Shown: positions 30,316 through 41,100 of the stretch, piece after piece | How the letters are laid out: every line of letters begins with the position of its first letter | Position numbering within the stretch: the stretch's first letter is position 1 | Assembly (NCBI GenBank): GCA_964247055.1 | Contig: OZ176055.1 | Coordinates: 8,990,001-9,054,000 of the forward strand | DNA: 64,000 bases | Source: Paragordius varius | Lineage: Eukaryota; Animalia; Nematomorpha | Direction of reading: 5' to 3' | Notes under the pieces: model-generated | What the model was told of the DNA's origin: nothing | Seen by the model: only the letters and a program-made list of their open reading frames with translations | Database searches by the model: none | Translations under genes and position numbers: made by a program

Positions 30316-32111
30316 TGAAAAAAAGAATAATATGATTTTTACGTGGAATTAATCTTTATATCTTTATCTTTGTCACCAATGTGCGAAATGCTCTATTTAT
30401 ATATAGTATTTATTTAAATTCTTAACAAGAATTTAACAACTATATAAGGTTTACTTTTTTTAGGGTTTTGACATATTTTTTATTAAAAATAACCAGCGTA
30501 AACATGCTAGGCAGCCCTAGGAAGTCATTCGGACTTCTGGGGGGGCTATTTGAAAAAAAGGGACAATAAAATGATCCACATATGTGGATTATTTCGAAAC
30601 ATTATTTAATAGCTATGATCTCATAGGAATCTAACTGTGCATTAATACTAATATATTGTTACTTGGGCGAAAAATAGATTCAAAAAATTATTGTGGATAA
30701 AAAACGGCATTTTACGGGGGAAGCGGGTAAAAAGAGGGCCTAAATTAAAAAAGCGAGCCGACTATGTTGGGCGCAATTAAAAATAAGTAAACAAAAAAAC
30801 ATATTTGAAATTGAATGGTCCAACACGTTCTCCGGAAAATTGTCTCAAAAACACGATTTTTGTGGACTGTTTTCAAAAAAATCGTTTTTACACGGGGCGG
30901 GCCCGAACTGGGGACCTAATTCAAAAAAAAGGGCGAAGCTATTCGGGGCATTCATTAATGATTAGATTTCGATATTTGGATTTGAATGGGTCTACCGGTT
31001 TTCCGGAAACAGATCACAAAGAAAGCATTTTCCATTTTTATAAATATATAGATTACCAATTTTGGATTTTATTTATTTTAATTTATAGTTTACGCGTATA
31101 TTTTTTCGGATTCTGAAAAAGCGGGCGTTCTCTCTTCATTTGTCTCATAAAAGGTGACAAGATTTGATAATAAACATGAGTTTTATGGTGATAATGTATA
31201 AGAGCAAGGAAATAGAAGCAAATTCTATTTTCCAGACTTTTTAAGAAATTTTATAAAAAAATGACAATATTTTTATTTTATTAATTTTGCCGTAAGATAA
31301 AAAAAATCACCTAAAGCTTTTTTCCATATATAGTTTTATTTAAATTAAATGTAACATAGGTTTTTTGATATTGCCAAACCATAAATATCCTACAAATGCA
31401 ATTAAAAAAATTGATATCATTAAATAAAAAATTATTTCCACAATTAAATAATTAACGCTATTTATTGTTAATAACTACAAGGGACGACGATCAATACCGA
31501 TTGTCAATTGTTAGGGTAAAAATTTCACAATACACATAATTGGTCTTGTAAAAGCATATGTTATATGATAATATGGATATATGGCAAAAAATTGGTTGAC
31601 AATTGATTTTATGCATGATCTAGATAAAAATGCAACATATAATGCACAGTAAAAATTGAAATTATACAGACAAAAGAACGAAAAAACGAAAAAATTAAAA
31701 TTTTTTTAATTAAAAACATCTTATATTTGTAAAATCATGGCTCTTTTAAATATAACCCATTGTTTTGAGTTGTAATTAGGGAATATAAATGTAGTAAATG
31801 GTTTAGAATCGATTAAATTAAAAAATATAATTAATGGTCTATCCAAGAAAAATTTCAGTACAGTCTATGTGGAACAGTATGGATATCGTTTTTTAAATCT
31901 ATTTTGTCTTTTGATATTAACATTTTGTCTGTATAATTTAAAATTTTTACTTTGTATATGAATAAGTAGGTATTTACATTAAAACATCGAATATAAAAAA
32001 TGAGATTATATTAATAATTGCATATATATATATATATATATATATATCTATATATTTGGAAGCTGTTTAATTGGGCGATAAAGGGAAAATGCACATATCA
32101 AATATATCTAA

Positions 32112-35100
32112 TTATCGATTTTTTTGAAAAGTCGGGTTTCTGTAAGTGGACGTAGCTTGACGAAAGATTGGATTTTCACCCTATATTCATATTGTGATAT
32201 AATAAAAAAATTTATGTAATATAAAATATAAACAAGTACTATAATATGACAAATAAAATCACGTAAAATAAATCACACAGCACATGCAAAAACGATATTT
32301 AAATTCATTCAAAAACTAAAAATAAAATTTTAATATACATACATACATGCGATGAAAAAATATCTAATAATGAAACAAACGTATTACCGTAACCCAAAAT
32401 ATAAATGATTTAATAAAACATTCTATTATGAGCAATTTAAGAATTCAAAATCAATCTTCATGCAATTTTTTTGCATTTTTTTGCCGAAGCCTTTATCGGA
32501 AAATTCCATATAAATTTGATTTAAATCCAACCATTTTACTAAATTATTTTTAATGCCTAAAAGGCAAGAAAATTTTATTTTATAATCATAAATGCGTGTA
32601 TACCGTATCCCATTTAGCGGATGAAAGATGTTTTTGGAATTTGGCATATTCCCTTCGATCATGGATCATGGTTAATATTTTCCACACAAACAATAAAGCC
32701 AATCCAATAATAGTTATACCAATCACGATGGGTAATATGATTGCTAATACTTTAGGGGGTTGAGGGCATGCTATTTTTTTCATTTCATTTCATTACATAA
32801 CAATTTTACATAACACAAGTGAAACATGCATATATAAATAATTTTTTATGCTTTAATTGCATGCCTTCTAATAATTCACACCCTTGAACATTCAATGCTA
32901 AAAATAATTTTGAGTTTTTGAGTTAATGTATCTCATCATTAATATGATATATTTCTTTGTGGCATAGTTTATAATTTTTTCTGTTTTATGGAAATTTTTA
33001 AGCAAAATTTATTTTTACCAATAAGATTATAGGTAATTTTTGTGATATATAAAAACCATAATATAAGGTGAATTTAAAATGTTCAGGGGTTTTAAATTGC
33101 TCAAGGGTAATTTAGAGATGTAAATAGTATATATATAATTAAATAGCCCATACATTTGCACCGCAGATTTTACAAGGCATGCGAAAATAAACCTCGCCTC
33201 AAGGATTATATTACACCGTATAAAATCTCTCATTCGCCAGTCCATGTTCAACTTTAATTCAAGGGGACAAAAATTGACAATCATAGCTTTTTGTTCAACC
33301 ATGCAAATGGATATCGTCAATTAAAGACGTAGAAATAACAAAATCATAGCAAATATTCATGCCAGAGCGAGAATAGAATGGAATAGAAATGTATAAAAGA
33401 AAGTCAATACAACAATTGCAATTCATGCATTTTAAAATGAGACTTTACAATCGAAGTTCGAAAAAAATGTATTATTACAGAATCCCATTTAGCATTTTCT
33501 TTGTCCCGTTCAAATTTAGCAAATTCGCGTGTGTCATGGAGATAAGTCACCAACTTCCAAACGAACAAACATATAAGTCCAATCATAATGATCCCAGCCA
33601 CGATTGGCAGGATTATGGGTAAAAGTTTTGGAAAATTTGGGCAAGCTTAATTAAATTTGTAAATGAAAAAATTAGTGGGTTGAGAAATTTAAATTGAGTA
33701 TATTTTTTTGCTTTTGTTTTAATAATTCTTATGGTTAACAAAGTTAAATTGTGAGATAAACGAAATGTTGTTGAATAATATAATTTCTACCCATTATAAT
33801 AAATAAGCGTTTTAACTGAAGGTTGAGGTTTTGACCGCCAGATATATAATAAAACTAATCAAATACACTAATGAGAATGCAGTCACTCTCAATTATAACT
33901 GATATCTTAGTACAACACCTTTAATATAACTTAATTAAGATTTGCAACAACAAATTAATTTGATTGAAAAAGTTAATCGGTAAATTAAAAATAAAAGGTT
34001 TTCCAATCAAATGTTTCCATTTTTAAGCATATTTTTTTAATTTGAAAAGCAATCACAGTTAGTGTTATTATTGCAATAAATTAGTAAATGTTTATAATCA
34101 ATTACTTATCTTTAATCCCAACACCCATAAAATCATTTAATAAAGGTATTTATTTAAGATAGATATAAAATTTACCCTTAGTTTTTTGCACTTTAAGTAC
34201 AAGGGTATGATTAGCGTCGTAGAGATACGTGAAATAAAAAGTGCAACCATCATCATCCTTAAATTGACAAAGGGTATTACTACTACTCTCTTTGTTGTCC
34301 TGTTCTTGTGTCGGCGTTTGTGATGAATCTATAAAACATATGAGTTGCTTATTTTTACAAAACAATTGAACCACAAAACCACTTTGAAAAAAACTTAGTC
34401 TATAATATACCATTAACAGTTTAAAACCATTCAAATTCACCCTTGAACAATTTAAATTCACCCTCTAACAACTCAAATTCCCCATTGAACAATTCAAAAT
34501 CCCCCCAAAAAAATTATGTTTTCAGGCTCAAATAATTTATTTTAAATATGAAATATATTTTTATGGCTTAGTTTATTATTTTATTCAATTTTATTTAATT
34601 TTGAACAAAATTTCATTTTTTAAAAATGTAAAAAAGTATAGGTAATTTTTAATCTTAAAAAACACATGATTTTTTTGGGGTGAATTTGAATTTTTCAAGG
34701 GTGAATTTAAATTGTTCAAGGAAATTAAAGGGTAAATGGTATATTAATCCGAAAAAACATAATTTATTTTTAGGGTGGCTTTGAATTGTTCAAGGATGAA
34801 TTTGAAGTGTAAATGGTATATATATTCTTTGTAATGCTAAATTTAAACCTTGAATTAAATCATCAACAGTGATTATATTTAATTGGCCGCATTGCCTATC
34901 ACATTCAAGTGTAGTTATGTGAGTGCTTGACTTTTTCTTACCTACCATTTCATCATCAGCCAATATTGATGGATTTAGGGTAGTTGCTAATAATTTTGAA
35001 AGTAAATATAAATTTGATAATAGTTTTTTTTAAATTTATTAATGTAAAACTTTTCATAAAATTCCATTCATATTTTTAACAATTTTTTTTGTAAATAGAA

Positions 35101-38100: not shown

Positions 38101-41100
38101 AATATATCTTTATATTAGAAATTATTAATTCTTCTGTACATGTTTTTAAATTCAAACACATTAGGTACATTTCGATATTGTAGGCACATAATAAAAATAA
38201 ATAAATAATTTGTAAGAGATGAGTTTGAAATGAATATTATATTATATCATTTACAATTCAAATTCCCCCTTGTACAACAATTCAAATTCACCTAAGTTTT
38301 AGAGTTTATATAACTCAACATTGATGCAAAAATTATTTCTTTATATTAGAAATTATTATTCTCTTCTATACATGTTTTTAATAAAAACAGGTAAATTATT
38401 ATGATTGATGTTCAAGAGGTGAAAATGTGTAGGTATTATATCATTTACAATTCAAATTTTGCCCTTGAACAACGATTCAAATTCACCTGTGTTTTAGAGT
38501 TTATATAACTCAACATTGATGTCTTTATATATTAGAAATTATTATTTCTCTTATGTACATGTTTTGAATTAATAAAAATAGATAAATTATTCGTAGGAGA
38601 TGATTTTGAAACAGATGATTGATGTTCAAGGGGTGAATTTGAGGTGTAAATATTGTATTATTGGTTTGGCCCAGTTATTGGGATTCCATGGATTAATTTA
38701 CGATATATATACCATTTACAATTCAATTTCACCCTTAACAATCCAAATTCACCCTTGAACAATTCAAATTCACCCATGAACAATTCAAATTCACCCTCGA
38801 ACAATTTAAATTCACCCTCGAACAATTCAAATTCACCCTTGAACAATTTAAATTCACCCTCAAATAAAATATATGTTTTTTAAGATTAAAAATTACCTAT
38901 ATTTTATATATTTTTAAAAAATAAAAATTCTATTTTAAATTTAAATAATACTGAAAAAATAATAAACTATACCATAAACATATATTTTATATTAATAATG
39001 AATTATATTAGTTCGAAAACACATAATTTATTTTTAGGGTGAATTTGAATTGTTCGAGGGCGAATTTGAATTGTTCAAGGGTGAATTTGAATTGTTCAAA
39101 GGTGAATTTAAATTGTTCGAGGGCGAATTTGAATTGTTCAAAGGTGAATTTGAATTGTTCGAGGGCGAATTTGAATGGTTCGAGGGTGAATTTGAATTGT
39201 TCAAAGGTGAATTCGAATTGTTCAAGGGCGAATTTGAATTCAAGGGTGAATTTGAATTGTTCAAGGAGGGCGAATTTAAATTGTTCAAGGGTGAATTTGA
39301 ACGGTAAATGGTATATCTCTATCATTTGTGACGTTTCGAGGTATATTCAGAAGAAATTTAAAATCTTGTTTTATGATTTATTTGAGTTCAAGTTGTTGGT
39401 ATATATATATATAATTGTAAAATTATGAAAAAATTACCCCATTACTGGCTATGCAAGTGGCATTAGAGTTTGGGCATTGACAAGCATCCCCTATCCAACC
39501 CTGGGCACAATTGCACGTTCCGCATTCACAGGTACCTCGACCTGGCCCTCCGCATACTTTGCCCTCATAACGATCACATGAAAAATTATCACATTCACAA
39601 AACTGACCACTAACAATTTCCAACGCATTTTCTCTACACAAGAATGAATTATATATTTTAAACGTTTATAGGAGAGGAAAATGAAAAAACTAAAAAATGT
39701 TTAAATTGAAACCAAAAAATTATGACATAACGCATTCTACACAAGCCGGAATGAGAAATAAGTATTTAAAAGGTAGATAGGAGAGGAAACTTATTATTAC
39801 ACCAGTCAAAAATGTTTAAATTGAAATCAACAAATTATGACATTCACAAAACTGACCGCTAACGATTTCAAGGCATTTTCTCTACACAAGCCGGAATAAT
39901 TTATAAATAAATATATAACTAGATAGTTTAAATTGAAACCCAAAAATTATAACCTTCAAAAAGCTGACCACTAACGATTTCCAAAGCATTTTCTCTACAC
40001 AAACAGCAGGAATGAGTTAAAAATTAGATAGGAGAGGAAATTTATTATTACACCAGTAAAAAAAATGTTTAAATTGAAAAAAAGATATGACATAAGGCAT
40101 TCTACACAAGCCGGAATAATTTATAAAAATTTAAAAAGTAGATATACGAGAGGAAACTGAAAAAAACCATCAAAAAAGAAACTTATTATTACACCTGTAA
40201 AAAACTGTTTAAATTGAAACCAAAAAAACTATGACATTCACAAAACTGACCACTAACAATTTCTAATGCATTTTCTCTATAACAGCAGGAATGAGTTACA
40301 TAAATATTTAAAAGGTAGATAGGAGAGGAAACCTATTATTACATACCAGTAAAAAATGTTTAAATTGAAACCAAAAAATTATGACATTCATAAAACTGAC
40401 CACTAACAATTTCCAACGCATTTTCTCTACACAGGAATAAATTATATTATTTAATAGATAGAGAGGAAACTTATTATTACATCAGTAAAAATGTTTAAAT
40501 TGAAATCAAAAAAATTATGACTTCAAAAAACTGACCACTAACGATTTCCAAAGCATTTTCTCTACACAAGCCGGAATGAGTTATAAATATTTAATAGATA
40601 GGAGAGGAAACTTATTATTACACCAGTTAAAATGTTTAAATTGAAACCAAAATTATGACATCCACAAAACTGACCACTAACAATTTCCAACGCATTTTCT
40701 TTCACAGGAAAATGTATTGTCATTAGATATTAAAATTAAAATCATGGATAAAATATAAAGACAATTATTATTTTGTAAAGACAACCATACTTTTTTAACC
40801 TTAATTTTTTGAATATACCTCTCATTATTTAAAAGTATGAAATATAGATAAAACACAATCAAGTATATATATTTTACTATTGTAATTAAATAATTTAAAT
40901 CTAAGAAAAATTAAGGTTTAAAAAAGTATGATTGCATTTTAAAACAATATTTTTCGTTATAGTTTTAATTTTTCTGTCTGTACAAATTTTTACACTATAT
41001 AGCCAAAACTAAAATTTGTTATAAAGTACAACCATACTTTTTTAACCTTGATTTTTTTAAAATATAAATCCATAGTTTTGAGTCGCTAAAAAAGGGATAG

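Follow-up and report, generated by a model that had tools for sequence, protein, structure and literature searches.

One integrin beta gene of the horsehair worm Paragordius varius carries, as judged from its sequence, a tandem pair of homologous exons, here called 17a and 17b. Each of them encodes 55 residues comprising a linker, the transmembrane helix and the membrane-proximal cytoplasmic segment of the receptor. The gene lies on the minus strand of a stretch of 64,000 nucleotides (nt) of genomic DNA (contig OZ176055.1 of assembly GCA_964247055.1, positions 8,990,001 to 9,054,000), the whole of which is called the 64-kilobase (kb) window below and supplies all coordinates. The pair probably arose when the transmembrane/juxtamembrane exon was duplicated in tandem long ago and both copies were kept as mutually exclusive alternatives, and the gene very probably makes two versions of the receptor. 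Tandem duplication leading to mutually exclusive exons is a well-known mechanism, but its location in the transmembrane segment of an integrin beta appears to be new. The gene and the exons in question are laid out as follows.

53339-32112, minus strand: the whole integrin beta gene, with PSI, beta-I/VWA, hybrid, EGF repeats, beta-tail, transmembrane segment and cytoplasmic tail; the 5ʹ end is approximate

34328-34176, minus strand: beta-tail exon, common to both forms; ends in VLKVQKTK plus one base (phase 1); GT donor at 34175-34174

33645-33479, minus strand: exon 17a, 167 nt, phase 1 to 0; AG at 33647-33646 and GT at 33478-33477; ERD at the ExE position

33478-32771, minus strand: intron between 17a and 17b, 708 nt; holds seven of ten sense-strand GCAUG motifs

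32770-32604, minus strand: exon 17b, 167 nt, phase 1 to 0; AG at 32772-32771 and GT at 32603-32602; QKH at the ExE position

32603-32181, minus strand: last intron; holds three sense-strand motifs

32180-32112, minus strand: terminal coding exon, common to both forms; 22 residues, then the stop at 32114-32112

When four full-length integrin beta sequences were used as tblastn queries, they gave one collinear exon series from about 53339 to 32112, with query residues from about 14 to 790 in order. The transmembrane exon was the only integrin exon matched twice in the window, while every other exon was matched once; a sensitive search found neither a third copy of the transmembrane exon nor a second terminal exon in the window, and none between the pair. 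The gene has the features of an integrin beta subunit, namely a beta-I domain with a metal-ion site (MIDAS), collinear domains, and transmembrane and cytoplasmic motifs. The MIDAS-type D-x-S-x-S motif reads DLSNS and lies in the exon at 51778-51629. Pfam Integrin_beta scored 118.9 and 44.9 bits on two single exons, Integrin_B_tail scored 32.5 bits on the beta-tail exon alone (slightly below the whole-protein cut-off of 33.6), and Integrin_b_cyt scored 36.0 bits on 17a and 37.8 bits on 17b (cut-off 23.4).

Both exons align end to end with residues 724-778 of human integrin beta-1 (8oxz_Q chain numbering), with E values of 1e-17 for 17a and 2e-16 for 17b, a resemblance far beyond chance. All splice sites in the region of the pair are GT-AG, and the boundary that follows WDT/WDS is shared with the vertebrate and insect genomic fragments that a profile search returned, all of which run from ...WDT into GT. 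The original prediction had placed two homologous 167-nt exons, phase 1 to 0, between the beta-tail and terminal exons, and its coordinates, lengths, phases and peptides all proved right.

The two exons are identical at 101 of 167 nt and at 33 of 55 residues (60% each), with flanks that show no similarity. A Nei-Gojobori count of 17a against 17b gave a pS of 0.81, which is saturated, and a pN of 0.28; identity by codon position was 34/55 at the first, 43/55 at the second and 23/55 at the third. We simulated neutral divergence with the local base composition until copies reached 60% nucleotide identity, leaving out indels. The frame stayed open in 3-5% of such copies, and an open frame together with at least 33 of 55 identical residues was found in fewer than 1 in 10,000, an estimate that is conservative because indels were left out.

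The differences also fall where the family tolerates them. Among 26 family representatives, the 22 differing positions lie on variable columns (mean entropy 2.16 bits, compared with 1.42 bits for the 33 common positions), and the family-invariant residues Cys1, Gly22, Asp37, Phe44 and Trp53 are all present in both exons. The maximum-likelihood tree groups 17a and 17b as sisters (support 95/88) on branches of similar length, 0.42 and 0.33, and neither branch is lengthened as it would be in a decaying copy; neither exon contains a stop or an indel. Compared with the family consensus, 17b is the nearer of the two in the helix and HDRREY, and 17a in the ExE segment. Both copies are, by these measures, under strong coding constraint. 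The possibility that one exon lacks purifying selection, which had been raised against the original prediction, was thus checked by pS and pN, simulation, family columns and branch lengths, and both exons were found to be constrained.

Inclusion of both exons or of neither had been predicted to break the frame, and translation of all four possible forms bore this out. With 17a alone or 17b alone, explicit translation gave a complete tail. With 17a and 17b together, the protein continues from AKWDS for eight residues without an NPxF motif, and the stop lies 143 nt before the last junction. With neither exon, the protein ends in ...VQKTKG at a stop within the last exon, so that this message could escape decay. 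As far as the reading frame alone can tell, skipping of both exons (the 34176/32180 junction) could encode a secreted beta ectodomain without a transmembrane segment. If the 17a donor is left unused, the frame stays open for 24 further codons (33478-33407, minus strand) and gives a tail without NPxF motifs. This read-through product has a formal likeness to vertebrate beta-1B, which arises by read-through at the corresponding boundary.

Under mutually exclusive splicing, each mature message would hold exactly one of 17a and 17b. Double-inclusion products would be cleared by nonsense-mediated decay, as for mutually exclusive exons in Caenorhabditis elegans whose length is not a multiple of three (non-3n), most of which rely on this decay against multiple-inclusion or skipped forms (PMC4165533). 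The 708-nt intron is long enough for splicing, and steric hindrance is therefore excluded as the mechanism of exclusion. With RNA pairing likewise unsupported (see below), the reading frame is left as the means by which exclusivity would be enforced.

A different use of the same frame property is that the pair is mainly a dosage or truncation switch, in which double inclusion (leading to decay) and double skipping (giving a soluble ectodomain) are regulated and one full-length form dominates; we consider this unlikely. The frame analysis does predict specific truncated proteins, the message that skips both exons has its stop in the last exon and would escape decay, and one exon predominates in several of the C. 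elegans mutually exclusive pairs (PMC4165533). However, a pure poison-exon role does not explain constraint over the whole length of both exons, the transmembrane helix included, and there is no evidence for truncated transcripts. Taken together, the selection and frame arguments make it likely that the alternative exon pair is functional.

Still less probable is that one exon is an unused relic of the duplication that is never spliced, leaving a single protein. Such a relic would agree with the lack of RNA support for either junction, with the weakness of both acceptors, and with the truncated junk copies of exon ends that the introns of this gene do hold. One of these, at 40562-40723 (minus strand), repeats the beginning of the EGF exon at 39635 in truncated form; it sits in the upstream intron and looks like a dead splice-junction duplicate. 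The genome does produce junk duplicates, on this example, but the 17a/17b pair is by its sequence unlike one: synonymous sites are saturated while pN is low, neither copy has a stop or an indel, the invariant residues are kept in both, and branch lengths, Pfam scores and Protein Data Bank (PDB) scores are about equal. In the simulations, fewer than 1 in 10,000 neutral copies at this divergence retained such properties.

A second sample, here called organism B, provided low-coverage, DNA-like contigs that are 97-100% identical to the locus. They cover 33483-33593 of 17a (111 nt) with one difference, which is synonymous, and 32604-32662 of 17b (59 nt) without any, the latter contig extending into the downstream intron. 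These contigs confirm independently that the exon DNA is real; organism B is too similar to say anything on conservation. It is, in general, possible that the second exon is part of an adjacent paralogue, or that the assembly wrongly placed haplotypes or collapsed copies in tandem, but we regard this as very improbable: the window contains the other integrin exons and the terminal exon once only, 17a and 17b are 40% diverged (much more than alleles would be), and contigs from an independent sample match both exon regions. The separate paralogous gene, which had been named as an alternative from the outset, is ruled against by the absence of any other doubled integrin exon in the 64 kb.

The region of the pair is rich in a known splicing motif. 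Over the 1.3 kb between the 17a donor and the terminal acceptor, the sense strand contains ten GCAUG motifs against 0.54 expected (P = 3e-10), among which are five UGCAUG against 0.21 expected (P = 3e-6). This cluster is the densest in the 64-kb window and was matched by none of 300 shuffles, and the antisense strand shows a slight excess, with three GCAUG against 0.56 expected (P = 0.02). The sense-strand motifs start at the following positions.

33424, 33358, 33300, 33178, 32860, 32825 and 32767, minus strand: GCAUG in the intron between 17a and 17b, with that at 32767 spanning the 17b acceptor

32459, 32346 and 32283, minus strand: UGCAUG, GCAUG and UGCAUG, respectively, in the last intron

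Measured from the 5ʹ end of each motif, the distances downstream of the 17a donor are 50, 117 and 174 nt for three motifs; three more lie at the 17b acceptor (90 and 54 nt upstream, and one across it), and one lies 140 nt downstream of 17b. Proteins of the Fox-1 family enhance from downstream sites and repress from upstream sites, and the egl-15 5A/5B exons of C. elegans are a direct precedent (PMC2777236). The cluster suggests Fox-1/Rbfox-type regulation of 17a and 17b, in which the choice would be tissue-regulated, probably through a protein of this type binding the (U)GCAUG cluster. Because the motifs lie downstream of 17a and upstream of, or on, the 17b acceptor, the predicted factor would favour 17a.

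Docking and selector RNA structures, a candidate basis for exclusivity and exon choice, received no support, as the inverted repeats are all weak (-11 to -14 kcal/mol). Among these repeats, the arm at 32300-32337 has two possible partners. The pyrimidines before the 17a acceptor (33661-33675) are complementary at 14 of 15 positions to the purines that end in the AG of the 17b acceptor (32771-32785). As a selector, this pairing was rejected: at -11.4 kcal/mol, it is indistinguishable from chance in AT-rich sequence.

Both predicted proteins have one transmembrane helix with the conserved Gly and W-K, the HDxxE-aromatic-xxF...W pattern, and two NPxY/F motifs downstream. Through the beta-1 alignments, the exons were mapped to beta-3 numbering, where exon position n corresponds to residue 686+n. 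In beta-3, contacts with alpha-IIb are reported for M701, I704 and G708 (outer clasp) and for W715, I719 and D723 (inner clasp; PMC3195670, PMC4345508). The equivalents of all six are identical in 17a and 17b, as is the snorkelling Lys after the Trp. Ten positions from 8 to 35 differ, and their mean direction is 170 degrees from that of the G708 face (permutation P = 0.064, resultant 0.43).

It had been proposed that the pair swaps the whole transmembrane helix and membrane-proximal segment and, by altering the inner clasp, sets two activation thresholds. The swap itself stands, but an altered inner clasp does not, as all alpha-contact equivalents are identical. Nor do the sequences suggest thresholds that differ through the clasp, the differences being on the opposite helix face and after the clasp. 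As the clasp residues are identical and the differences lie elsewhere, we replaced the clasp mechanism with a hypothesis of partner binding at the ExE segment.

In the cytoplasmic part, both exons have Asp37, Glu40, an aromatic residue at 41, Phe44 and Trp53. The aromatic residue and the Phe at two membrane-proximal positions, present in both, are presumably talin contacts. Directly after the clasp aspartate, 17a has Thr where 17b has Arg, and further differences are F versus Y and ERDKEN versus QKHLSS. The ExE motif is thereby E-R-D in 17a and Q-K-H in 17b, both acidic residues being gone from the latter; in the family sample, 92% have Glu at the third ExE position. In beta-1, the ExE motif (767-EKE-769) is the direct binding site of G-alpha-13, and its mutation abolishes outside-in signalling while talin binding is not reduced (PMC4603935). 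Judged from the two sequences, the functional difference most likely lies in partner binding at the ExE/membrane-proximal segment plus lateral helix contacts, and not in the clasp. The two receptors would then keep one alpha-subunit interface and one NPxF tail, and would be distinguished by the lipid-facing side of the helix and by the cytoplasmic segment next to the membrane. Their difference would act through cytoplasmic ExE partners, outside-in signalling or lateral membrane contacts.

To signal across the membrane, integrins rely on the transmembrane helix of the beta subunit together with roughly its first 25 cytoplasmic residues. The known natural beta isoforms change the ligand-binding loop or the distal tail, never the transmembrane or membrane-proximal part. 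The original prediction knew of no transmembrane-exon switch in an integrin beta; our full-text literature searches agree with this, having found no report of one in any integrin beta. We put forward tentatively a fuller picture, in which a Fox-1-type factor would pick, in each tissue, one of two natural receptors that share the ectodomain, the alpha face and the NPxF tail and differ in the lipid-facing side and the ExE segment. If mutually exclusive use of the pair is true, evolution can tune the transmembrane/membrane-proximal segment separately by tissue, and under the fuller picture the worm would offer a natural experiment that separates the inside-out function of the clasp from ExE-dependent outside-in signalling. 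Integrin biologists would also have two natural variants for work on activation, clustering and outside-in signalling, with differences mainly off the alpha-contact face and at the ExE motif.

Several observations weigh against the main reading, that of a mutually exclusive pair. No sequencing run on record as RNA contained the locus, and there is no transcript support for either exon; from three small runs, presumed to be RNA, only one 47-nt contig was obtained. The only second sample compared is the near-identical organism B, which covers both exons in part. The 3ʹ splice sites of 17a and 17b both have weak pyrimidine tracts, and the best long-range RNA duplex in 32100-34330, at -27.7 kcal/mol, falls inside the shuffled range (-22.5 to -30.1). 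On the protein side, the helix-face statistic is weak at the P value given above and reaches 0.012 with a residue list taken only in part from cited sources, and G-alpha-12/13 may not bind integrin tails in protostomes. Lastly, the best match of the beta-I exon among 1.84 billion protein representatives was 72% identical and came from a metatranscriptome, with no horsehair-worm sequence found.

The 47-nt contig was present in run X4 (depth 315) and run X5 (depth 107), which carry the same species label, and covers 33483-33524 in the cytoplasmic part of 17a. It has six mismatches to 17a in 42 nt and could come from a paralogue or another organism.

A best match of only 72% for so highly conserved an exon fits a poorly sampled phylum. 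A profile of 17a/17b searched against proteins of 30-96 amino acids returned only vertebrate and insect fragments, and a C-terminal profile searched against proteins of 108-345 amino acids gave a best match of about 56% identity; neither returned a horsehair-worm sequence. The ordinary layout, with a single transmembrane exon of the same boundaries followed by the terminal exon, was seen in a metagenome contig and in a contig of the clade-I nematode Soboliphyme. The Soboliphyme exon is 62% identical to 17b and 49% to 17a.

Known systems resemble the worm pair in part. Exons 4A/4B of Drosophila myospheroid (beta-PS) and their insect equivalents are likewise homologous exons of equal length that lie in tandem in an integrin beta gene and exclude each other, and a pair of this type is seen as Agrilus planipennis beta-PS X1 and X2, both of 834 amino acids and differing only at residues 231-259. 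The 4A/4B switch concerns the ligand-binding loop of beta-I, whereas in the worm it is the transmembrane and membrane-proximal part that is exchanged, and the ectodomain stays as it is. Vertebrate beta-1A/B/C/D and Anabrus simplex beta-PS X1/X2 share with the worm an alteration of the cytoplasmic face, and their variable part starts at the conserved exon boundary after WDT/WDS that the worm gene has too. In those isoforms the distal tail with NPxY is replaced and the transmembrane/proximal part kept; the worm does the opposite, with a common distal tail and a swapped transmembrane/proximal part. The insect beta-PS isoform pairs that we retrieved differ in the beta-I loop or the distal tail, and none differs in the transmembrane exon.

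The egl-15 5A/5B, unc-32 and lev-11 clusters of C. elegans share with the worm pair an origin by tandem duplication and non-3n lengths (PMC4165533, PMC2777236). In these clusters, exclusion is enforced by nonsense-mediated decay and the choice is made by the Fox-1 family through UGCAUG, whereas regulation in the horsehair worm is predicted from its motifs. The paper that validates 29 mutually exclusive clusters in C. elegans makes no mention of integrin or pat-3 (PMC4165533).

Two minor features of the locus may be added. Both cytoplasmic NPxY motifs, encoded by the terminal exon, are NPxF (NPIF and NPTF), with no tyrosine within either NPx motif; the same NPIF/NPTF pair is found in a mite protein, and NPIF/NPNF in one further family member. 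Arrays of a 21-nt unit (GGGTGAATTTGAATTGTTCAA and variants) lie at 34425-34505, at 34678-34721 and in many other introns. They belong to a very high-copy family, and the summed contig depth of array stretches in run X3 reaches about 27,500.

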